Part shown: positions 5,946-42,765 of the stretch, piece after piece
How the letters are laid out: every line of letters begins with the position of its first letter
Numbering within the stretch: position 1 is the first letter of the stretch
Assembly: GCA_038496445.1 (NCBI GenBank)
Contig: JALMLS010000577.1
Location: 1,191,014 to 1,255,013 of the forward strand
Source: Trichosphaerium sp. ATCC 40318
Lineage: Eukaryota; Protista; Tubulinea
Reading direction: 5' to 3'
DNA length: 64,000 nucleotides
Program-made: the position numbers and the translations under genes
The notes under the pieces: model-generated
Databases searched by the model: none
Seen by the model: the letters and a program-made list of their open reading frames with translations, nothing else
Told to the model about the DNA's origin: nothing

Positions 5946-6093
5946 ATATCCTCTAGTACATAAACTTTGCTAGTATTATATCACGTGATATTACATATGT
6001 TTGCTGAATGTGTACATCTCGAATGCTCTCGCTAAGTGCTGTGAATATCATAATAAATTAAGTGGATCACATATATAACAACGACTTGTTGAC

Positions 6094-7655
6094 ATGATTG
6101 TTGAAATAATTCTCTCACTTGTAGTTGTGGCTATTGCAGCCACATGTGTAAAAAACTGGTCTAGAAAAAGAAGAAACCTTCCTCCTGGTCCTTTATCACT
6201 ACCGATAATAGGTGACTTGCATTTATTTGGTGATCCGGGACAATTTAGTAACTGTATAATCTCAATGGCTAAACAGTACGACGGAATCTTCAGTCTAGAT
6301 ATGGGGAATCGTACAGCAATATTTTTAAGTACTCTACCACTCATCAAAGAAGCGTTTGTGAAGAAAAACAAAACGTTCTCCAATAGACCTAAAACACTTA
6401 TTCCTGTCGAACTTGGATGGTACAATACATTGTTTACTTGTTGGTTATTTATAGTACCTATGTTGCCAAAAATACATAAAGAGTTGTTCGCTTTCACTTT
6501 AATAAAACTCAACTAAAAAACCCCACAACTTTCCGTCTTTCGTATCAACCCTGACTGAATCAATTTAGGGGAAAAGATCCAACTGGTGGTACATTATTTG
6601 CAAATGGAGAGCACCATAAAGCAGCCCGTTTGATTTGGAGTACTCACGTGATTAACCATCAAAACATGAACAAGGCAGTGAACATTCATATAGAACAAGT
6701 ACAAAGGAGCTACAAGCACCTAGTCAAACTCGCTGAGAATAAATCAATAATTGGTGCTGAATCAATATCATCAACTGTAGCTTTTGACTCAATTTCTCAA
6801 CTCCTGTTTGGTCAAAATGGCTTTGGTATGGACAACGACATTGGAGGATTGTTTCACACGCAAGAAGAAGCAATGAAAGAAGTTAACAGACCATTCCTTG
6901 GAGATTATATTCCAATGCTTCGTTTCTTGCAGAAGGACCGAGAAAAGAAATACCTAGAAAACTGTGACAGGCGCGATAAATGCCTCAGTAATATCTTTGA
7001 ATCAAGAAAACCAAGTGACAACAACATTGTTGATGTGATACTCAAACATGTTCCTTCGAAACCAAGAGCAATGTCAATCGTTCAAGAGATACTCACAGGA
7101 GGGTTTGATAGTGTAGCCCAGACGCTACAAACAGCTTTAACTGCTCTCGCGAAGAACCAAAACGTTCAAGAGAAGCTATACCAAGCACTCAAGGATCACG
7201 ATGTTATGTCGTGCGATATTTCTGAGCTGAAGAATATCAATTATTTGACTTGGGTCATTCAAGAAACCTTCAGATATCGAGCAACAGCACCTATTTACGT
7301 CCAACACGAAGCTTCTGAAGATAGCGAAATAGGAGGTTACTTTGTGCCTAAAGGAGCGCTTATTATTGGACTACATGGATGTGTCACATCGTCGAAAAAA
7401 CGTTTTGGAGATCCTGAAGTATTCAGACCAGAAAGATGGGAGAAAGAACAAAAATACGATATTGCTCCTTTAAGTTTAGGTCCTCGCACGTGTCCTGGAA
7501 AGAAAATTGCAATGGTATTGCTGTATCGTCTCTTTGCAACGTATTTTGGAAAGCTAAAGTGGAGTGAAACTGAAGTTTCAAATGATGAGTCAACGCATTT
7601 TTGTGCTGTTAACAAGTACATTATAGAGCCACAGTTCTATGTCACCCTACGCTAA
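6094..7655 (+). CDS. Cytochrome P450 (one intron 6420-6568)
   Basis: N-terminal TM, PPGPLSLPIIG hinge, ETFR (ExxR), PERW, heme motif LSLGPRTCPG. Confidence 0.95.
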
Positions 7656-8008: not shown

Positions 8009-11000
8009 ATGAGCGCATTGAACTTTCTCAGCGAGATATCTGTTACTGGTAAATTCTCTGGGGTATCAGGCAAACAACGCAATAAATTAAACGTTTGTCA
8101 GATTGTTTTAACTAACAGCAGGCAACGTAACACTACGACAAGTTTACCACAACGATAGTGATCATCCAGTTGAATGCGCTTTTGTATTCCCAAAATCGGC
8201 TAAAGCCATCATTACAGGCGTAGTGGTTAAAGTAGGAGATAAAGAGTTTCAAGGCAAGTAATTGTTTAACGAATTCTGTCACGAGAAGTTCTGATTTTCT
8301 GGTTTTTGATTAGCAAAGATCTCCTCCAAACTTGATGGCATAGAGATGTATGATGATGCAATAGCTGAAGGAAATACACCGTGTATGGTTGAGCAACGCC
8401 AAGAAGACGTTGTGAAGCTGTCAGTAGGTATTATATTCTTTCGACAATTTAGAAAAATATCGTTACCATTCAATAGGTAACCTTGCTCCTGGTGCTTCTG
8501 CAATAGTAGAAATGTTTATGGTTGTGGAGGCCTCATATGACATGGACAATAGATTACGGATTTCCACTCCCCTAACTCTACGTCCTCGTTTTCTTACCGG
8601 ACATGCTACAGGTCAGCAAAATGTCATGTTTTTTATTGTTTAAAGTGTCCTCTTACCAACAACAATAGGTTCTGTGACCAACGATGTTTCTTTCAAAAAT
8701 GATTCGCCGTATGCCTATGATTTAGAATATAGTATATCAATGCCTATGCCAATCATGGCTATCACCTCACCCTCCCATGATATACAAGGTCTTTTTTTTT
8801 GAAAGACATCTTTTTTTTTTTAATTCTATTGAAGTTGCATGGGATAATGGTGTAGCTATTGTCACTGCAGTACCTAGTGCATCACAAAACTGGCAGGATT
8901 TCGATATTGTGGTAGATACAGAACCTAGCACATCACCTAGAGTTGTATGTGAGACAAACGAAGAAGGGACACGTGCAGTACGTGTTATACAAATAAACTG
9001 TTTTTACTTACAAAGAATGGATTAGGTGCACGTGACTTGCTTCCCTTCATTTAAAAATAAGCCGCAATGTGTTAAACGTGAATTCATATTCTTACTTGAT
9101 AGAAGCGGGAGTATGTCAGGATCAAGGTAATGTTACGTTGCCATTCGTACACTAACAATAGATATTAGAATATCTCATGCAAAGTCTGCGCTACAGCTTT
9201 TTTTGAGAAGTATACCGGTTGACTGTATGTTCAACATCATTAGTTTTGGTAGTAGCCACGTGAGTTTATTCCCAAAAAGTATGGAGTACTCAAATGAGAC
9301 CCTCAAAAAGGCATCATCATCCGTTAATTCCATGGGCGCTGATCTAGGTACATATGTTGTCACATGTACCCTAACAACGTAAGGTGGTACTAATATCCTT
9401 GAACCTCTCAAATTTGCTCTGGAAACCTCTTATAGTGACTATCAAAAGACTGTTTTTCTTCTTACGGATGGGGAGGTAGATAATACACAGCATATCATTG
9501 AAGTTGTTCGTAGTAATTCACAACATGCCATAGTTTTTTCAAGTGCGTGATATTGAAAATATGGTTGTGACTAACTTACCATAGTTGGTGTTGGGTTATG
9601 TGCTTCAACTGCTCTAGTTGATGGTATTGCTGAAGCTGGTGGCGGAACTGCAGTTTATGTCAAACGTAGTGAGGACATTGCTCCCCAGATTATAGGTCAG
9701 GTACGTATACTAAGTACAATTTTAGCTCAACTTCCTTACTGTTTTTCAGCTGAAGACACTTCACCGACAACTCAAGATAACCTGGAGAGGAGTACATACT
9801 CAGAGCTTTCCTCAAGATGGTAGTAATATTGTTTTTAATGACGACAGTAGTGTATCTGTAATGGCTATAATTGGTGAAGAAAAATTAAGGTATCACAAAT
9901 GTATCATACATAAACTCTACTTTTTGTGCTAACTATAATTTAGTTCTGCCGAGCTGATACTCCTAAGTGAGGATGAAGAATATAGCGTAAATCTTGCAAG
10001 TGCTTTGTACACTCACGGCAACGCCTTACACCAAATATGCGCTAGTAAGTTGTTAAAATATAAAACCAAGGAAGACGCTTTGGCTATGGCTGTACATTAC
10101 TCTCTATTAACAAATGACACGTGTTTTGTTGCAATCGAAACAAAGAAGGAAAGTGTTTTGGGAGCAATGAAAAAAATAGATATTCCGTTGCCAATAGTAC
10201 AAGAGAAGAATGTTAATACTTACAACTACACCCCACCGACTCAGTACTCATCTGTTACACCTGCTAGCACCACTCCCGTTCTGCAATCACAGCTTCCCAA
10301 GCTTAAAAAACTACCAAAGGGAGCTCCCGGCGCCAGTGCGTTTGAGTACATCTATTTATTCCTAACTCCATACTATAGAGGTGCTTCATTCAGGAGCAAA
10401 TAACTATGCCCGGCGATACAAGGTACAACATGATCGTGTTAATGTACTTGTTAACTTGTGCAAGGCTACAATTGGAGCTGATTTCTTAGCAAAGGAATCC
10501 ACTCTTAGTGATGGATCAACTATTTCAACACAATTATGGGTACTTCTTGTGATGTATGTATGCTTTTCCTTAAATAGTGTAGGATACACCTGGAGTAGAA
10601 AGATTTCATGGTCTGGGACAGTCAACCTTTAGGGGAGTAGACTTATTTGTTGTAATATACTCTATTGTTGATAGACTATCCTTTAAGAACATAGAAGGCT
10701 GGATTGATACTGCTTGTTATGATTCACCTAGAGCAGTTTTTATGCTACTTGGAAACAAGGTAAACACTCCTTTCAAAATCCTGTTTATACTCATAAGTGC
10801 AGTTGGACTTAGAAGATAAGAGGGTTGTATCCACCTCTGAAGGTGAGGCCATTGCTTCACGACATGATATGTATTTCGCAGAAGTTTCTGCAAAAACCCT
10901 TGATGGTTTGGAGGAAGCAGTGCGTGTCATGTATCAAGGTACACTTAGATATTTCCAAGATTTTGTTGATTTGTTCATAGACGCCTACAGATCTTCTTTA

Positions 11001-11785
11001 AACAACAAATACTTTTCTGGCTGCAACAGAACGAAAAGTAAGTAGTATTTTTTTAAACCAGCTTTGTTGACATACTCTAGTCGTCATGTTAGGTGACGCC
11101 AACGTCGGGAAATCAGCACTTGAAAGGCAATTTTCTGGGTTCACTGTTGACTTGGCAGAATATGTTGACTATTTGAAACAAAACGGGTATGAGGGTCCCA
11201 GGGATTCTGCGGAAAACGACAATCAACAAAAAAATAACCCTGGTTTTTTCTCTCGCATGTTCTCCAGTCTGTTCAGGACACGAAGTTCTGAAAAACCAAA
11301 AACGCGTAAGATTATAAATGTAAATAGTTGGTTGACCTTGAGTAGCGGTGAAGCCAATAACCCACGTGCCAACACATACACAAAAAACAACGACAAGAAT
11401 CCACAGCGCAGAGCCTCCATCACTTATCGAATCAAGTGCTTCAACCAAAAACTTGATGGACATTGTTGTGCTTCAAAGGGCAAACGGAACTTGGATTCTT
11501 TCGCATGAATTTGCTACAGCATTGGGTCGTACACTAGAGGACATAAAGGCGGGTAGACCACAAAAGGTGACTTATATTTGTGTTTGTTTTGAGGATACTA
11601 AAAGGTTGTTATAGCCATCAGTTGATGATAGCACCTGGGCTACCATGCTAGCTGTGGAATACTTAGAAGCCATTCCGTCAAGAAAAGACGAATGGTTTCT
11701 AGTTGTCACTAAAGCTAAGGAGCAATTGAAAAATGTTGAGCCATCGTTGCTTATGCAAGCAAAACAATTTTGTAGCACAGATTGA
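8009..11785 (+). CDS. VIT-vWA (VWA5A/BCSC-1-like) protein with an inserted, circularly permuted Rab-like GTPase domain
   Basis: VIT (QVYHND..VECAFVFP, YDDAIAEG, GNLAPG); vWA MIDAS DRSGSM...GGT...LLTDGEV; Rab motifs YKATIGADF, WDTPG, GNKLD, EVSAK, then KIVMLGDANVGKS; C-terminal LQRANGTW...WATMLAV...EWFLV typical of VWA5A. Confidence 0.9.
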
Positions 11786-22120: not shown

Positions 22121-24788
22121 ATGTCTTTGGCTGCTTGCAGGGCCGTCAGAATTACAAACAACGCTGGATTGCGGAAAAATGTCCAAAGGTCTCTCAAACC
22201 TACCAGGTCCCAATTTTTTGCTTTTTCTTATACCCTTTCCTGTCCAACAACATGGATACATTTTGAAATGAAAACGTTGTAAACTCAAGTAAACCAGCGT
22301 GATTATATCGCTAATTTGTCTCAAAACGTTTACTTCTTGCCTCACACATGCATTTTAATACGTTTTTTTGTGCCTATCACTAAAACCTCCGTCTTTTAGT
22401 GCGTACACTGCAAGGAGAAGCTATACTACTGTTTTGAACAAGAACACGGTCACCAAAGCATCAGTGGCCACAAAGTGCGCTTAAGAAAAATTTTACGAAA
22501 TGCGTACTAACGTTGTGAAAGAGCACCGTTACGCTCTAAGGCTGGCAACCGCATGCAAATGAGGTTTTACAGCAACCCTTGGGATGGAGTTGACTTTGAA
22601 GTACTTCAAATGCCTGCTCTATCGCCTAGTATGGAGAAAGGAAACCTTATTTCCTGGGAAAAACAAGTTGGGGACGAAATACAACCGTCTGACATTATCG
22701 CGCAAGTTGAAACAGACAAGGTGAGCGTTAACAAAAAAAAACTTCGAAAAAAACAAAAATAACCGCAACTACAATCCCTGCCTGTAGTATTTCCATATTG
22801 TTGGTGATGTGGCTCCAGTGTTAACCGTTGAATAGGCTACTGTCGCTTATGAGGCTACCGATGAAGGTTACATGGCAAAAATGTTGGTGGAAGCAGGAAC
22901 AAAAGATATTGATGTTCACACACCTGTTTGCGTTGTAGTTGCAGAGGAAGAGGATATTCCAAAACTTGCAAACTATACTGCTGGTGCTGGCGAGTCTGCC
23001 CCTGCAGCAGAACCAGCTGCTTCTGAACCGTCACAACCAGCAGAGCCTGCAGCTCCTGCAACACAGGTACTAATTGTTACCACCATTACCAAATGAAAGA
23101 AAAAAACCCGAAAAAAACCCGATTAGAAATTTACTTGATATTAGGCTGCTGAGCCTCCAGCTCCATATACCGCTCTAGATATGCCAGCACTATCCCCTTC
23201 AATGTCACATGGCAACCTTGTGTCATGGTCCAAGAAGATTGGAGATCCAATCAGCGCTGGTGATGTTATTGCTGAAATTGAAACAGATAAGGTAAAGTTC
23301 GAGCTATCTACTTTATTTGGCTTGTTCTTATATTTAAAAAAAGGCTACTGTCGCATTTGAAGCTACTGATGACGGTTTCTTGGCCGAAATTCTTGTACAA
23401 GAGGGTCAAGAAAAGATTTCTGTTGGCACACCAATCGGTATAATGGTTGATGAAGAAGAACATGTGCCATTGATGAAAGGCTTTAAGCCAACAGGCGATG
23501 CCCCTACACAAGGTTAGTGCTTACTCACTACTTCGTTTTTTTTTTGTACAAACTAATGGCTATTTAGCTGTTGAGGCAGCACCAGAACCTACAAAAGCTG
23601 CACCTGCTGCTGCTACTGGTGAGTCAACACCTGCTGCTGCACCTGCTTCTACTGGAGGCCGCGTCACTGCTAGTCCTTATGCGCGTAAATTGGCACAAGA
23701 AAAGGGTTTCGATATCGCTGCAGTTAAAGGCACTGGTCCTAATGGCAGAATTATTGCCGCAGATATTTTGGAGTTCACACGTAAGTGTTGGATTTGTCAA
23801 TAATGTTTTTAGATATTTACAGTCTATTAGCTGCAGCAGAAACAAAGGCACCTAAAAAACAACAAGCCCCAGCTGCCACAGCAACAGAAACAAGCGCTGT
23901 GCATGACGGTCTATCTTTCAAAGATATTCCAGTATCTAATGTCCGCCGCGTTATCGCTGATGTATTGACAACATCTAAACAAACTGTGCCACATTACTAC
24001 CTCACTGTTGACTTTGAAGTTGACAAGTTAATGGCTGTTCGTAAGCAGCTAAATGATGAATCAAAAGGAGAATACAAACTATCCGTCAACGATTTCATCG
24101 TCAAGGCTGCCGCTCTTGCCTGTAAAAAAGTGCCAGAGGCCAACAGCCAATGGCGTGGAGAGGTCATCAGGCAGTACGTGTTTTTTTTTTTGTTTTCACA
24201 ACATGAGCTCTGGTGACTTACATTTCGCTCTTAGATTCGAGAATGTAGATATCAATGTTGCTGTAGCTGCTCCTCAAGGACTCTTGACACCTATTGTTCG
24301 CGGATGTGAAGGCCGTGGCCTCACTTCAATCTCTGTTACTACCAAAGACCTCGCTGTCAAAGCCAGAGACGGAAAAATCCATCCTCAAGAGTTAGAAGTG
24401 CGTTCCTTTTTAATTGGTTTTTGCCCAATCTTACTTTTTGTACTAATTTGTGTTGTATAGGCTGGTACATTTACTATCAGCAACCTCGGTATGCTTGGTG
24501 TTAAGCACTTCTCTGCTGTCATTTTGCCACCACAAGCGTGCATCTTGGCTGTAGGTGCAAGCTCACAAAAGGCTGTTATTGACGAGTCTGGTCCTGAACC
24601 TGCTCTCAAGAATGTATCAGTAATGGAAGTTACATTGAGTTGCGATCACAGAGTTGTAGATGGAGCTGTTGGCGCACAATGGCTTAAAGTTTTTAAAGAC
24701 CTAATGGTACGACATTATGCTTTCATTTATTTTTGTACCATTCATCTAACAAACCTTTTAGGAAAACCCAATCAAGATGTTATTGTAA
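22121..24788 (+). CDS. DLAT: Pyruvate dehydrogenase E2 (dihydrolipoamide acetyltransferase), two lipoyl domains
   Basis: Mito presequence [10 protein letters not shown]; two MPALSPSM...ETDKA lipoyl domains; [17 protein letters not shown] binding domain; [10 protein letters not shown]. Confidence 0.95.
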
Positions 24789-24980
24789 GAATCCCATTAA
24801 AATAAATTTTTTTAGAAGAACCAAGTCTGACATAACCCTAATATGTATGTTGCATACGTAAACTCCACTTGTGGTCTCCAAATACATTTTTTTTTATTTC
24901 TTGTATCTTTAGTTCTTTTACACTGTATACTGTTGTATGGCTAAAAATTGTTGTTTGTCTGTCTTATTCGGATCCAAGGT

Positions 24981-27655: not shown

Positions 27656-30600
27656 ATGGATAAGAATTGCACGCTACTAATCCACTCTGAGTTGTCAGAG
27701 AAGCTAAGCTCGAGTGTGCTTCGCCAACAACTACAGAAGGGCAAAGAGGAAGAAAAATGCGCCGCTTTAAAAAAAATCATACTGTTGATGCTTCGTGGCG
27801 AAAAGTTACCAGAGTTGCTTATTCCTATCATACAATACGTAATACCTAGTAAAAACCACACAATCAAAAAATTGCTCTTAATCTACTGGGAAATCGTTGA
27901 AAAGACCTCTCCAGATGGCAAGCTGCTTCAAGAGATGATTTTAGCGTGGTACGTACTTTGCTGACGTAGAAGCGTCACAAAAAACTAAAAAACAAAAAAT
28001 TCAACTATCCCAAACTAATGGTGCTTTTTCTCTCAGCAACGGACTCCTACAAGATTTGAACCACCCAAATGAATACATTAGAGGAAGCACTTGTAGATTT
28101 TTATGTAAGTTGCGTGAAGCAGACCTCCTTGTACCACTCGTCGATAGCGTACGACAAAATCTAGATCACAGACACTCATACGTCAGGTGCGAGTGACAAC
28201 AGGCGAAATAACAACTTGTTAACGTTTTTAAAAGGCGAAATGCTGTACTCGCTGTGTACAGCATCTATAAGCAATTTGACCAACTCATCCCAGACGCACC
28301 GACACTAATATACGAATTTTTGATGCAGGTACCTGCAACGTCGCCAGCAAGAATAATTTTTTTTACTGGCCCCACACGCAACCAACGCTCTAGTGGAGCG
28401 CCTTGTTTGTGGTTTTGTATTCTTTTTTTTTACATCACCAAAAAAAAATAAAACCTCAGGCTTCTGATTGTTTTTCATAGGAGGGTGATCCTTCTTGTCA
28501 AAGGAATGCGTTCATTATGCTGTTTAATTGCGCGCAAGACAAGGCTGTTGAGTACCTTGTGTCGGTATGAAGTCACAATTTCTTGGTTTTTTATTTTTAT
28601 TTCGAGTATTAATGAGACCATTTAGATCCTAGACCAAGCCGCGTCATTTGGCGAGCTCTTGCAGTTAATTATAATCGAAGTTATCCGTAAGGTGTGTCGT
28701 CAACACCCTGACGAGCGTGGTAAATATATGAGATGTATTTTTACGTTGCTATCTTCTGGCAGTCCTGCAGTTCAATTTGAAGCGAGTTCTACTTTGGTTT
28801 CTCTCTCTTCTGCCCCTACAGCTATCAAGGCCGCCGCATCTGCATACACAAGCATTCTGTGCAAGGTGTCAGACAACAATGTAAAAATGATTTTGCTTGA
28901 TCGTTTGAATGCTATCAAGCGTAACTTTGGTCGCATATTAGAAGACATGATCATGGATATTTTGAGAGCATTGGCAACGTGCGCGATTTTTTTTTTATTT
29001 TTTTTTTTTATGATGCTTTATTTTAAACTTGACTTTGGTCTGTATCTTATATTTCGCGTAGACCAAATAAAGATATTCGACAAAAGACTTTGGACATTGC
29101 TTTGGACTTAGTGACTCCTGGAAACATTACAGAAGTCGTACAACTATTAAAAAAAGAAATCCAAAAAACAGAGTCAGAAAGCGAAGATAAGAAACAAGGC
29201 GCAGAGTACCGTGACATGTTGATCAAAGCTATCCACCAATGCGCTGTCAAATTTCCTGCTGTAGCGCAATCTGTTGTCCACACTCTGATCGAGTTCGTTG
29301 GCGACACAAATACACAATCAGCTTATGATGTTGCTCGCTTTGTTAAAGAGGTACGCTTGATGTCCTTAGTGTTTAAAAATGTAAGTGTTTAATTTTTATT
29401 ATAGGTTATACAAACGTATCCTGAGCTCCGTCAAGATCTGTTACATCGCTTGACAGACACAATGACACAAATCAAGTCAAGCAAGGTACATGCTTCAGTT
29501 CTTTGGATTGTTGGCGAATACTCTGAGACTGCGGAAGATATTGAGCTCTCAAGTCAAGCAATCAGAGACAGTTTGGGTGACCCAACATTTAAAGAGCTTG
29601 AGGAAGAGGAGGTAAGCTTTGTCACAAGGAAAAAAAATAACAAGAAAGAACAGAAAAGAAATGATTACGATTCTTACCTTTCACTTTAGCAAGACACCGA
29701 AGCTATAGTTCCAAAGGCTCCAGAAGTACTGGCAGATGGCACATACAAAACAGCCAGTGCCTTGGCAATGCGAGAGAAGACTACTTCTGGTGATAAGGCG
29801 CTTGATACATCGCTTCGTGGTCTGATTATTCGTGGCGATTTTTTCCTTTGCACAGCAGTGTGCAGCACTTTTGTAAAACTTGCACTCAAAGCAGAGAAAA
29901 AATTGGGTCTAGAGCATGCTAATACGCTCAATGCGTTGGTACTGTTATATCTTAACAGCTTCTTGCGGTTAGGAAAATCCAACGTTCCACCACAGCCTAT
30001 GGACGAGGATAGTTATGGTATGTGCATTTGTTTTTGGTTACAACGGCCCCCCACTCTTTTTTCTTACGCTATGTTAGAGCGCATCTTACAATGTATACGC
30101 ATTCTCGAGACAAGGGATGAAAATGCTGTGGGCGTGTGCTTACAAGACTCCCGCAAATCATTTCAGCGACTGTTGGCTCACCAAATTGAAAAACGTGATG
30201 CCATAAAACGTGAACAAAATAAGGAAAACGAGGTGGTGATGCAAGCGGATGATATCATCAAAGTCGCTCAACTACGACCAAGGAGAAGCTACGGAAAATC
30301 AGAGGAGGCTCAAGACGAAGGTAAAAAAAAAAACCAAATAGCCCTTTTTGCTCATTTTTAGATTACCAAAACGTTTCTTTTTGTTTTGCAAGTTTTTGAC
30401 AATGTACTAGATGAGCTAGATATTCGTAGTGCTACTGGTGCTGGCACAGGTCATGTTGACTTTCAAACACAATTGAAGAACATTCACCAACTCACTGGCT
30501 TTTCAGACGCGATTTATGCTGAAGCTTTTGTCAATGTTAACCAATACGATATCGTTCTAGGTACGTCAATAAGCCTACTTCGCCCCTGTATTACAGATTA

Positions 30601-31417
30601 ACGCTAACTTTTTGATTGACAGATGTCACACTTACAAATCAAACTGATGACACATTGCAACATTTGGTTCTTGAACTTGCTACTTTGGGTGACTTGAAAC
30701 TTTGCGAGCGACCACAAGCGTATACACTTGGTCCTTTTGGCAAACTGAGCATCAAGTCTAACATTAAGGTGTGTTGTAGTGCTTTATCCTCATATAACTT
30801 TTACAATTTGTGTTCTTTTTATTTGGCGTCTTTCTCAAGTCCATTCTAGGTATCCTCTACTGAGACTGGTGTTATATTTGGATCAATTGTATACGACGTT
30901 GCAGGTAGCAGTCAAGATTTGGGCCGTAACTGTGTCGTGCTTAATGAAATCCAAATCGACATTATTGAAATGATTTTACCTGCCACAACATCTGAATCTA
31001 ACTTCCGCACAATGTGGGCAGAATTTGAGTGGGAGAACAAAGTTGCTGTAAATACTGACTTTACGTACGTGTTTGTCTATTTTTTATTTGTGTTAATTTT
31101 TTGTGTTAGTAACCTTAAAGAGTTTTTGGATCACGTCACAGCCGCAACCAATATGAAGTGTTTGACATCTGATGCATCACTTCAGGACGAGTGTGGATTC
31201 CTTGCTGCAAATATGTATGCAAGAACAGTGTTTGGTGAGGATGCATTGGCCAATATTTCTATTGAAAAACATGCCAATAAAATTATTGGTTTTATCCGGA
31301 TTAGAAGCAAGACACAAGGTACACGATGATTTACCTGTTAAATTTTTACATGTTGTAGGTATTGCACTTTCATTGGGTGAAAAAATAACTCAAAATCAAA
31401 AGATGCCAGCTGTTTAA
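27656..31417 (+). CDS. COPB1: Coatomer subunit beta
   Basis: [76 protein letters not shown]. Confidence 0.97.
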
Positions 31418-38630: not shown

Positions 38631-41600
38631 TTAGACCTGTCCAGCTTGGATGTTCTTATCCATAGCATTGCAAAATTGAGCGATAGGTTTGCGGGATAAG
38701 GTGTTGGCATCGGTGTGGTTAATACCTTTTTTATATACAACATTAAAGTCGTATTGCTGAATTTCCATCAGCCACCGTGCTACCACATCTCGCGGATCTT
38801 TTAGAGTATGCAAGTATTTTAATGGTTTGTGATCAGAGTACACGATTAATTTAAAATTCGAAAATGATAAATAACCACGGAATTCTCTGAGAGCCATTAC
38901 TATACCCAAGCATTCTCTATCAATTGTAGAGTATCGACGCTGGGAATCGTTAAACGTATAGCTGTAATAAGCTATCACATGTTGCTTTCCTTCATGGCGT
39001 TGAACCAAAGTTCCTCCACATGCACGTCCCGAAGCGTCAACATGTATTTCAAAAGGTTTCTCGAAATCAGGATGTCGAAGTATAGGCGGAGTCATCAGCG
39101 CTAACTTCAGACTAAGGAACGCTCTATCACATTCAGACGTCCATATCCAAGGAGTATCCTTCTTTCGGAGGTCATTTAAAGGAGCCGCTTTGCGTGCGTA
39201 ATTTGCAACGAATTTTCGATAGTATCCCGTAATACCCAAAAATGATTCAAGTTCCTTGATATCATTAGGGCGTTTAGCATCTGCTATCGCTTTGATAATG
39301 CGTGGATTAGTAGCTACTCCATCAGCAGTTACTACATGACCGAGGAACTCAATGCTATGTCGAAATAAAACGGATTTACTCGCTTTCAGTTTAACGTTAT
39401 ACTTGCGTAATCGGTCGAACATGAGTTTGAGATGTACAAGGTGGTCATCAAAGCTATCACTGAATATAATAATGTCATCGACGTAACATAGGCATACCTG
39501 CCATAGTAAACCTGATAACATTAAATTCATATGACGCTGAAATGTAGCTTGTGCATTTTTGAGTCCGAAAGGCATTCCCATAAACTCAAAGAGTCCCCAG
39601 CGAGTTGCAAAAGCTGTTTTGCACCTATGTGCAGGATGCATTGGTATTTGCCAATAGCCAGCTACAGCATCGAACGAGCTAAAGTATTTGGCTCGATTCA
39701 ACGCGTTTAAAAGATCTTTAACCCGTGGTAGTGGGTGTACATCTTTAGCTGTAACTTTATTTAGAGCTCGAAAATCTATACAAACACGCCAAGCTCCCGA
39801 AGGTTTACGTACAATCACTACAGGCGAACTTCATGATGACTTGGAATGTCGTATGACGCCATCTTTAAGCATCTTATCTACCTCCTTACGTAAGATTTTC
39901 TCTTTGTTAGGATTAAGGTGTCGATAAGGAATACTAATGGGTCTCATGTCCGCAGGTGTATCAATGAAGTGTTCAACTCCTTTGACACGCCCAGGTTGTT
40001 CGAGGTTTTCAGTAGCTCTGTTCAGATACTGAGCTAAAAGATAATAAGTACGTTCTTTCTGATCTTCAGAAATATCCGATCGTTCAAGTGTGTACATATC
40101 TTTAGCTTTTTTCAGCATTTCTGGTGTAACTTGCTTTTTGGTTTCATTGATAATTCGAAGCTCTTTGTCGTAGTCAATGTCAAGGATATTGATTTCTTGC
40201 GTTTCATCAATTGCGGTAAATCGCGCAATGCGATAGCCACGTGGTATACGCATATCTTTGTTATAACCATTTAATACTCGTATAGGTACCATATTTTTAG
40301 TTACTCTACTCAGTGAGGCGGCGAGTTGTATTCCCGTATCGGTTAACAACTGTGAGTGACCATCTAACTCCAATGCCTTAACTGTTTGTACTACACCTAG
40401 TTTACTAACAATAGGAGACGAAACTTTAGCGAATACTGTGACTTGTGACAATTTAGGTATGATAATATCATTCGCAGCAATAATCAGCGCTTCACCCTCT
40501 TTGTAAGCCTTAGTACGCGTTTGCGTCATCCTAATCGTAGTTCCCTTGGCTGTACGTAACTGTCCTTTAGCAAAATCAATGGTTAATTGATTGCCTACCA
40601 GCATATTCATACCTAACAACAATGGGAACTTAAAGTTTTTCATAATATGACATTTAACTGTGAAATTTTCACTACCTATTCGAATAGGTAACTCTATTAT
40701 GCCCATTGATGTCATTGGTTGGTTGTCAGCTGTAAATACGGGACTGGTTTTAACCCTTTGGATTAATGAATGCAAGTGTAAGTCGTTAACTAACTTGTAG
40801 CTAACTATACTAACCGAAGCACCCGAATCGAGTATGGCATTAACAGTAGATCTATTAACTACGACATTGGCTTTGGCTATGCTGTATGAGTAGGTAGGTA
40901 CATTGATATTATCGATGTCCATAACCACTTTACTAGCATGCATATACGCGAGGTTGATGTAACCTGTGGAAGTTGGATTATTATCATATTCTATGGATTT
41001 AGGAATATTTTGAGAATTTGGATTATTATGATACGTGATATTCGCATCTTTGTGATTATTTTTCTCATGATTATTTAACGCGTTGGGGTTGTCGTGTTTT
41101 TTAATAAAAGGATTATTTTTGTTATTGATATTTTTGTTATTCACCGACAAAGGATAAGGACCCCAATATTTATTTTGATTGTTATTCGCGTTTTGATACA
41201 AAGGATAAGACTGCTGTTGATTTGACGCAGTAGGATTATTGTTGGATGGAGGATGGTAAGAACCATCAGGATTGAGCAGTCTAGCGATATTTTTGTCATC
41301 TAAGATAAGGGCCATATGGTTACCTTGACCAGAGAGACTGAATACGTAAGAAAGGTACACTGACTCTCTCTTAGCCGTCAACTTTGTCCTGCACTCTTGC
41401 GCAAGGTGACCACCCACACGACACCTTTCACACGGTACTTGAAAGTTGACACGATCAAGCGGTGGACCTGATTTGTTCCTGTCACGATGCATGACATAAC
41501 CAGGAGGTGGTTGTTGGAAATGACAAATTCTCAAATTGTAATGTCGATTACGCCGTTTGGGTCTAGGTCGTTTTTGTTGATAAGGCTGTGATGACTGCTT

Positions 41601-42765
41601 TCCATTCACCCATGGAGGTGTGTTATTGTAATTCTGTTGCCAGTTGTTACCCTGAGGTTGTTTCGGCCATTGGTTCTGCACTTGATTGATGTAATTCATT
41701 TGATTATTCATTTGCGCGGTTGATGCGAAACAACTTTCAGTGTAGGATGCTATTTCTAACGCTTTGGCTAATCGCATACCCATTTGTTTACCGCGTAATT
41801 GTAGCGCTACCTGTCCGTTGATGCTTGTATGTAAACTGTTAAGGAATTTTTCGGCTTGTTCTTCTTCATTGTATAGGGAACGATCACCTATACTCTTGAC
41901 TTGTCTAAACCAATTCTGTACGTTGAGATTTAACCCTTCTTGTGTCATAGTACTGAATTGCTTTCGTGATTTGACTACTTCCGCGAATGAACGAAAGCGA
42001 GCGAGTAGTGCGTGAAGAATCTTTTGAGGTTTATCCTTTAAACTGAAATTGTGTACTATCTCACCGGCTTCGCCTTTGGTATAATTCTGTAAACAATAGT
42101 TGTATGCTTCTTGATCGTAATTGTTGCTGTCGACGTATTTCTGAACACTACGCAAAAATTCATGGAGATCACCATTGTCACCGAATTTTTCTAAATCGGG
42201 ATTTCTATGTTTAGGTGTTCGCTTGATTGTATCACTCCAATCGATGCCCACAACCACTCCGTTTTCGTAATGTCGGTGTGGTAGGTAATTCAAAAGCATA
42301 CTCTTAACCATGGCACTATATTTAGGAGCACCATTGGCATCGAGCTCATCTAGGCGATCGATTTCTCTTCGTTTATCCTGCGATCCTCTACGAGCACGTT
42401 TATCACGTTTGTCACGGGAGTGATCAGATCTCGAACGACTAGAGCGGCGTAGAGACAGTGACGAGCGCTCTAGCAAAGTGCCCAAAGAAACAACCACACC
42501 ACTAACAACAACAACAACAACCAGTGTGTAGTGTGCACGTCTTCTGTATAGACCGCACCCCCTCCGAACGTCCCTTGACGAGTTGGGCACTTCGCTAGAG
42601 CGCTCGTCACTGTCTCTACGCTGCTTACGTTTTTTAGATTTGCGTCTCGAAGGGGATCTATCACGGCGATCATCACCATCTTCACTGTTACTGGGAGACG
42701 ATGGTGGCATCATCATCGGGTGGATGACAATAGCGACTCTTAGATTTGTGTTTGTGTACTTTCTT
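38631..42765 (-). pseudogene. gag-pol pseudogene of the gypsy element
   Basis: ORFs 39831-42716 and 38631-39818 are in the same frame, split by TGA where conserved W of SxSxWSSPVV is expected; truncated by element C. Confidence 0.85.

Follow-up and report, generated by a model that had tools for sequence, protein, structure and literature searches.

Can a Rab-type G domain begin at switch I and end with its own P-loop? The question is raised by a gene on the forward strand (8009–11785) of a 64,000-nucleotide stretch of contig JALMLS010000577.1 from the tubulinean protist Trichosphaerium sp. ATCC 40318 (assembly GCA_038496445.1, positions 1,191,014 to 1,255,013); this whole stretch is referred to below as the window, and positions are counted from its first letter. 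The gene, with ~19 exons and ~960 codons, encodes in order a VIT domain, a VWA_3 domain, a linker, a GTPase-like module, a second linker, and a C-terminal domain. A sequence-only reading of this DNA had proposed that the nucleotide-binding motifs of the module follow the order G2-G3-G4-G5-G1. We consider it probable that the locus encodes a real module, namely a circularly permuted Rab-family G domain housed in a VIT-vWA protein; at the level of the gene sequence, the domain is truly Rab-like, and its circular permutation, a third one for this fold, has apparently not been described before.

The evidence that carries this conclusion comes from a Rab profile built from 58 full-length single-domain Rabs, themselves taken from a search of representative sequences. 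Against the spliced protein, profile positions 32–177 matched the residues that begin with NNYARRYK-ATIGADF and continue through helix 5 with 147 bits, and profile positions 9–32 matched a late piece, RTKIVMLGDANVGKSALERQFSGF, with 13.7 bits and a conditional E-value of 2e-6 (17.2 bits when the piece was searched alone). The canonical chain order G1-G2-G3-G4-G5 is not followed, as profile positions 32–177 precede positions 9–32. When the late piece was moved to the front, the split matches became a single match of 177 bits spanning profile positions 9–176, with one inserted residue at the joint; therefore, nothing is missing from the Rab domain and almost nothing is duplicated. The outcome bears out both the proposed motif order and the proposed cut between helix 1 and switch I, which falls at profile position 32. 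The five motifs and the Ras-like fold signature of the Rab family are all found, and the match of the late piece together with the long open frame is well beyond chance.

The permuted order can be followed along the exons of the module, all on the forward strand. In the first (10379–10422), VLHSGANN may be left over from the last part of helix 1, and YARRYK begins switch I; the Rab profile alignment starts at position 31–32 on NNYARRYK. The next exon (10465–10539) carries G2/switch I (ATIGADF, 10465–10485) followed by strand 2 and strand 3, and the third (10583–10759) carries G3/switch II (DTPGVERF), helix 2, strand 4, helix 3, strand 5, and the GNK of G4; an intron divides the G3 motif W/DTPGVE (10537–10539 and 10583–10600). 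The LD that completes G4 (GNK/LD, 10751–10759 and 10803–10808) opens the fourth exon (10803–10938), which continues through helix 4, strand 6, G5 (SAK, 10887–10895), and helix 5. The Pfam Ras family (PF00071) matched the third exon at profile positions 54–113 (E 1e-10) and the fourth at positions 114–155 (E 3e-7), in collinear order. Between the introns at 10939–10980 and 11038–11080, a short exon (10981–11037) encodes the end of helix 5 and most of the ~15-residue linker that leads from the native C-terminus to the native N-terminus, that is, from helix 5 to strand 1. The sixth exon (11081–11305) then supplies strand 1 (KIVMLG), the G1 P-loop (GDANVGKS, 11092–11115), helix 1, and a low-complexity linker that contains a candidate amphipathic helix.

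At the front end of the module, the proposal that switch I becomes the N-terminal tether of the domain holds for the site of the cut; switch I is not literally first, as ~7–10 residues (VLHSGANN) precede it. At most, these residues may derive from the original helix 1. They are amphipathic (moment 0.56), and a helix 1 leftover is visible only in BLAST extensions. At the other end, the residues PGFFSRMFSSLFRT (11239–11280), downstream of the late helix 1, have a hydrophobic moment of 0.59, the second highest among the C-terminal 500 residues, with bulky hydrophobics at i, i+1, i+4, i+5, i+8, and i+9 and a polar face of Ser, Arg, and Thr. We speculate that PGFFSRMFSSLFRT is a membrane-binding amphipathic helix that could replace the missing lipid anchor.

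Which Rab the module resembles depends on the exon queried. Among solved structures, the switch II exon (10583–10759) was best matched by Ypt7 (36.7 bits) and the switch I exon (10465–10539) by Ypt7/Rab7, in agreement with the Rab7-like G2/switch I of the sequence-only reading; the exon that carries G4 and G5 matched Rab2, Rab10, and Rab1. The subfamily assignment is weak because this G4–G5 exon is nearer to Rab2/Rab10. Identity to the Rabs compared is 33–42%, and a member of the Rab family that is Rab7-like in its switch regions would be the limit of what the sequence data support.

G1 (GxxxxGKS), the switch I Thr, DxxG, NKxD (here NKLD), and SAK are all present, which makes nucleotide and Mg binding by the permuted module plausible. 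The earlier claim that all five motifs are retained thus stands as far as nucleotide binding is concerned; it does not extend to the catalytic Gln of DTAGQE, for which the module has Val (DTPGVE), with Pro in place of the preceding Ala. Gln61-type substitutions cripple hydrolysis in Ras-like GTPases, and DTPG often serves as G3 in other GTPase families. By analogy with these substitutions, the replacement of the catalytic Gln by Val is likely to make intrinsic GTP hydrolysis very slow.

As had been claimed, no P-loop precedes G2 and no G2 or G3 follows the late G1: on both strands of the window, no Walker A motif in a Ras-like context was found besides the one at 11092, and the Rab profile returned no match in the N-terminal flank and none in the 80 residues after the late helix 1. 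No DNA repeat was detected between the N-terminal flank and the G1 exon, and a recent duplication was rejected on this ground. Two further candidates were also rejected: i) a vestigial N-terminal P-loop, suggested by a BLAST extension to one sequence (P0143; GAPG, then a 4-residue deletion), where the Rab profile is silent, and ii) a remnant of a second domain after G1, suggested by a weak alignment to a Nog1-type GTPase (E 0.55), where the Rab profile finds nothing. In the BLAST extensions, the flank KLKKLPKGAPG-AK lies opposite the canonical LLKVLLVGDSGVGKTA and has the appearance, unproven, of a decayed strand 1 and P-loop. Being too polar and rich in Lys and Pro, KLKKLPKGAPG cannot be the buried central strand 1; the late KIVMLG can.

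These faint flanking alignments could be explained if the locus were a decaying tandem Rab-Rab relic, in which the first domain had lost its P-loop and the second had kept only its P-loop, so that the pieces are separate and the region is a non-functional spacer. Natural tandem Rabs do align collinearly over the G5-linker-G1 segment, the weak extension into the N-terminal flank is P-loop-like despite its deletion, the one solved Nog1-type structure aligns weakly beyond G1 to NNPG, a possible old G3, and the G3 of the module contains Pro and Val. We nevertheless judge a relic of this kind to be unlikely. The Rab profile has no match on either side of the module, the two ends share no DNA repeat, and G1, G2, G4, G5, and the hydrophobic strand 1 are intact, with 238 codons open; moreover, the core motifs are well preserved, although a Ras fold that lacked its central strand could not be stable.

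Is the late G1 exon joined to the rest of the module in a single reading frame? The window has ~38% G+C and numerous very short introns, in line with the published Trichosphaerium draft genome (37.7% G+C and 8.7 introns per gene; PMC10521059). The five GT-AG introns that had been proposed (10423–10464, 10540–10582, 10760–10802, 10939–10980, and 11038–11080) all run from GT to AG, are 42 or 43 nucleotides (nt) long, and possess a YTRAY branch-like motif 10–15 nt upstream of the AG; splicing them out reproduces exactly the peptides quoted in that proposal. Three further introns were placed, at 10336–10378 (43 nt), 11306–11345 (40 nt), and 11567–11614 (48 nt). The first of these, a phase-1 intron of the form GTGCGT...CCTAAC...TATAG, opens the GTPase cassette and is needed for the open frame. 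After removal of all eight introns, the 3′ half of the gene is a single stop-free frame from 9944 to the stop codon at 11783–11785, comprising 9 exons in frame and separated by GT-AG introns of 40–49 nt with a branch-like motif. The cassette (10379–11305) amounts to 714 nt, or 238 codons, and is bounded by phase-1 introns on both sides, which fits a shuffled module. All 238 codons are open in AT-rich DNA in which the mean stop-free run is 17 codons, and the stop-free run containing G1 extends for 145 codons, a length reached by 22 of the 7251 stop-free runs in the window.

Several observations weigh against a permuted Rab module. The G1 exon is 225 nt long with phase 1 at both ends and could therefore be skipped without a frame shift; retention of the intron at 11038–11080 would put a TAG (11044–11046) in frame; and the Ala-to-Pro and Gln-to-Val substitutions in G3 could be signs of relaxed constraint. 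In addition, this copy had no transcript, ortholog, or paralog in the searches made. For the exon at 10583–10759 (59 residues), compared with 1.84 billion representatives, the matches listed were all canonical or tandem Rabs of at most 52% identity; the exon at 9939–10334 (132 residues), queried against a set of 5.8 billion, had no relative among proteins of 73–231 residues; and scans of JGI metagenomes with back-translated MLGDANVGKSALE and WDTPGVERFHG gave 0 matches. The proteins of the source genome are apparently not in the searched collections. A genome scan with a vWA exon retrieved only planctomycete vWA open reading frames (ORFs) of 333–363 residues.

The skippable exon, the in-frame TAG with an ATG at 11089 downstream of it, and the missing transcript are also what would be expected if the gene model or the assembly were at fault, the mRNA having no G1 after G5 through exon skipping, intron retention (which would yield a truncated protein and a separate downstream product), or mis-assembly. 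We regard such an artefact as improbable. The intron at 11038–11080 starts at a consensus donor (AAAA|GTAAGT), a branch-like motif accompanies its acceptor, and at 43 nt it is like its neighbours; a gap of this size is too small to hold a promoter, and the C-terminal exons are in frame only via this exon chain.

Two sequences encountered in the searches deserve mention in their own right. A transcript of the foraminifer Bolivina argentea in EukProt (P0072) encodes strand 3, G3, G4, G5, a 13-residue linker, G1, ~90 residues, and the start of a vWA domain (DISGSM). Starting at strand 3, it resembles in that respect the layout of cpRAS-vWA proteins, a known permuted family, but its sequence is Rab-like. 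Its relatives are only canonical Rabs, it is a singleton in the collection with no encoding contig on record, and it could be a chimeric assembly. In a 391-residue ‘tandem Rab’ representative (P0009), the two repeats are identical, which suggests an artefact of transcript assembly; tandem Rab matches call for checking before they serve as natural examples.

The protein that houses the permuted module has the architecture of a VIT-vWA scaffold, in which a VIT domain precedes a vWA domain that bears a metal-ion-dependent adhesion site (MIDAS) motif. The gene model, curated manually against Pfam matches, starts with the ATG at 8009, and none of its exon translations contains a stop; the first intron is uncertain, running from 8049 to 8118 or 8121. 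The VIT domain is encoded by exons at 8122–8253, 8314–8427, and 8477–8611 on the forward strand, with collinear matches to PF08487 in two exons at profile positions 16–60 (E 3.5e-8) and 63–96 (E 0.0034). Within this region, 8254–8313 is likely a 60-nt GC-AG intron (donor CAAG|GCAAGT), because no GT donor keeps both collinear VIT matches in one frame. The vWA domain, which belongs to VWA_3 (PF13768), occupies forward-strand exons at 9026–9126 (with the MIDAS sequence DRSGSMSG), 9169–9347, 9384–9542, and 9585–9700; here too the matches lie in two exons and are collinear (profile positions 20–71, E 1.1e-8, and 76–126, E 0.038). A forward-strand exon of 130 codons (9944–10335) that matched no Pfam family follows the vWA region, and its Thr/Pro/Ser/Gln-rich end, probably a disordered linker, leads into the GTPase module.

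Downstream of the GTPase cassette come ~90 low-complexity residues and a C-terminal domain of ~100 residues. The last two exons (11346–11566 and 11615–11785, forward strand) encode the Thr/Pro-rich linker and this domain, which bears the motif VVLQRANGTW, and terminate at the stop codon; they fall in frame only once the introns at 11306–11345 and 11567–11614 are removed. The C-terminal domain had no match in Pfam or in the Protein Data Bank, and we presume it to resemble the C-terminus of VWA5A/PARP4. No signal peptide was seen by eye at the N-terminus, and the host protein is therefore probably cytosolic, a VWA5A-like protein of VIT plus VWA_3 type. The protein ends in ...CSTD; the C-terminal Cys prenylation motif of Rabs (CC, CXC, or CAAX) is absent.

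How does the module compare with permuted GTPases already described? Two orders are on record, G4-G5-G1-G2-G3 for the YlqF/YRG family and G3-G4-G5-G1-G2 for cpRAS (PMC2430557), just as the sequence-only reading had given them, and its contention that the present arrangement is distinct from both also holds, as the cut point differs from each. The string G2-G3-G4-G5-G1 occurred in no paper covered by a full-text literature search, in which the articles on circularly permuted GTPases dealt with YRG members; a 2026 survey from the field of the cpRAS authors cites cpRAS only.

The closest parallel is cpRAS (Elias and Novotny 2008, PMC2430557), likewise a eukaryotic, permuted Ras-superfamily G domain in a large protein with a vWA domain, in which a short loop joins helix 5 to strand 1, and with a protist-rich distribution that includes Amoebozoa. 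The two differ at several levels. The cpRAS cut lies between strands 2 and 3, whereas the cut described here separates helix 1 from switch I; G2 forms one uninterrupted stretch with strands 2 and 3 ahead of G3, and no Rab signal follows the late helix 1. cpRAS belongs to the RAS family and has a TIE G2 motif, which the Rab-type module (YKATIGADF, WDTPG) lacks. Finally, the cpRAS domain is either followed by a zinc finger and a Sec23/24-type vWA domain or contained in a COG2373/A2M-like protein (PMC2430557), whereas in the present gene the GTPase follows VIT and VWA_3.

The YRG/YlqF/YawG proteins share with the module a natural permutation of the P-loop GTPase fold that places G1 after G5, and their solved members retain GTP binding according to work cited in a passage of the cpRAS paper (PMC2430557). 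The YRG cut is located after strand 3, whereas G2 and G3 precede G4 in the present module, and the YRG proteins are ancient TRAFAC ribosome-assembly factors of all domains of life that neither belong to the Ras superfamily nor reside in a vWA protein. The junction of helix 5 with strand 1 is common to YRG and cpRAS and is therefore compatible with the fold.

Relative to Rab7/Ypt7 and canonical Rabs, the re-ordered domain fits the Rab profile from end to end; the canonical proteins differ in being unpermuted and in possessing a C-terminal Cys prenylation signal, the catalytic Gln, and the Ala of G3. Natural tandem Rab-Rab proteins (for example, P0017, P0001, and P0004) display a collinear G2...G5, short linker, G1 series, with BLAST alignments that run from the G5 of one domain into the G1 of the next, collinear with the locus, and may represent a plausible evolutionary precursor; in them, the first G1 and the second domain are both complete, and the locus has neither. 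With proteins of the VWA5A/PARP4/ITIH type, the gene shares an N-terminal VIT domain and, after it, a vWA domain of the VWA_3 type whose MIDAS reads DxSGS, and the 238-codon GTPase cassette in the linker after the vWA region sets it apart. We know of no GTPase module in VWA5A/PARP4/ITIH proteins.

A structural model for the permuted Rab module can be proposed. The chain would start at switch I (G2), proceed through G3, G4, G5, and helix 5, and pass over the ~15-residue linker to strand 1, the P-loop, and helix 1. The late strand 1 would take up the central position of the sheet and the late P-loop would complete the nucleotide site, with the new chain ends side by side at the helix 1/switch I loop. 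With entry and exit of the chain at one surface loop, the module would be attached at a single point within a long flexible linker. This loop between helix 1 and switch I is also where G-alpha proteins carry their inserted helical domain. That the late strand 1, P-loop, and helix 1 instead enter another chain, with nucleotide driving the formation of dimers or polymers of the vWA scaffold, is very unlikely: long flexible linkers do flank the late piece, and permuted and split folds are in general prone to domain swapping, but ~15 residues of linker suffice for a single chain to close the domain, as happens in YRG and cpRAS (PMC2430557), which renders complementation between chains unnecessary, and nothing observed points to oligomers.

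As for function, the single-chain permuted module would most likely bind GTP and hydrolyze it very slowly on its own, furnishing either a long-lived ‘on’ Rab-like interaction surface or a switch that depends on an outside GTPase-activating protein. It may couple the vWA scaffold to Rab7-type partners or to membranes; without a prenylation site, contact with membranes might be aided by the amphipathic helix after helix 1, although this is speculative. In origin, the module probably descends from a tandem Rab-Rab intermediate that lost sequence at either end, or from an already permuted cassette inserted into a phase-1 intron. The collinearity of natural tandem Rabs fits the classical route of duplication and trimming, and no direct trace of that route was found at the locus.

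A different role, which we think improbable, is that of bait: the permuted, hydrolysis-dead Rab module would make a family of cytosolic VIT-vWA proteins into sensors, each with an embedded trafficking switch (Rab7-like in this gene), a form of ‘integrated decoy’ immunity in a protist. On this improbable reading, the scaffold would detect Rab-modifying or Rab-binding effectors of intracellular bacteria or giant viruses, and the permutation would leave both switch regions exposed and do away with the membrane anchor.

Other features lie elsewhere in the window. Upstream of the VIT-vWA gene, at 6079–7652, lies a cytochrome P450-like gene (assigned by eye); its 366-codon exon had no relative of 201–640 residues at E 1e-20, a threshold that was too strict, among 1406 word-sharing candidates from the set of 5.8 billion. 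Downstream, forward-strand exons at 28600–31300 and 23800–24800 resemble, by eye, those of housekeeping genes, the coatomer beta subunit and the 2-oxoacid dehydrogenase E2 subunit, respectively. On the reverse strand, 38634–42716 harbors a pair of long ORFs resembling a long terminal repeat (LTR) retrotransposon; one, of 961 residues, contains a retroviral-type aspartyl protease (Pfam), and the other, of 395 residues, a reverse transcriptase and RNase H.

After the discovery of the first permutation of the G domain, it was argued that no other could fold, a view that cpRAS disproved, as recounted in a passage of the paper describing that family (PMC2430557). If the present reading is true, this third site of permutation, where helix 1 is parted from switch I, would mean that the G domain tolerates a P-loop separated from switch I along the chain, and the Rab family would join the permuted set. 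The module would likewise offer engineers a natural template for a GTP switch inserted into a host protein via a single attachment point. For the biology of these organisms, the gene points to an unexplored class of amoebal vWA scaffolds with built-in Rab modules.

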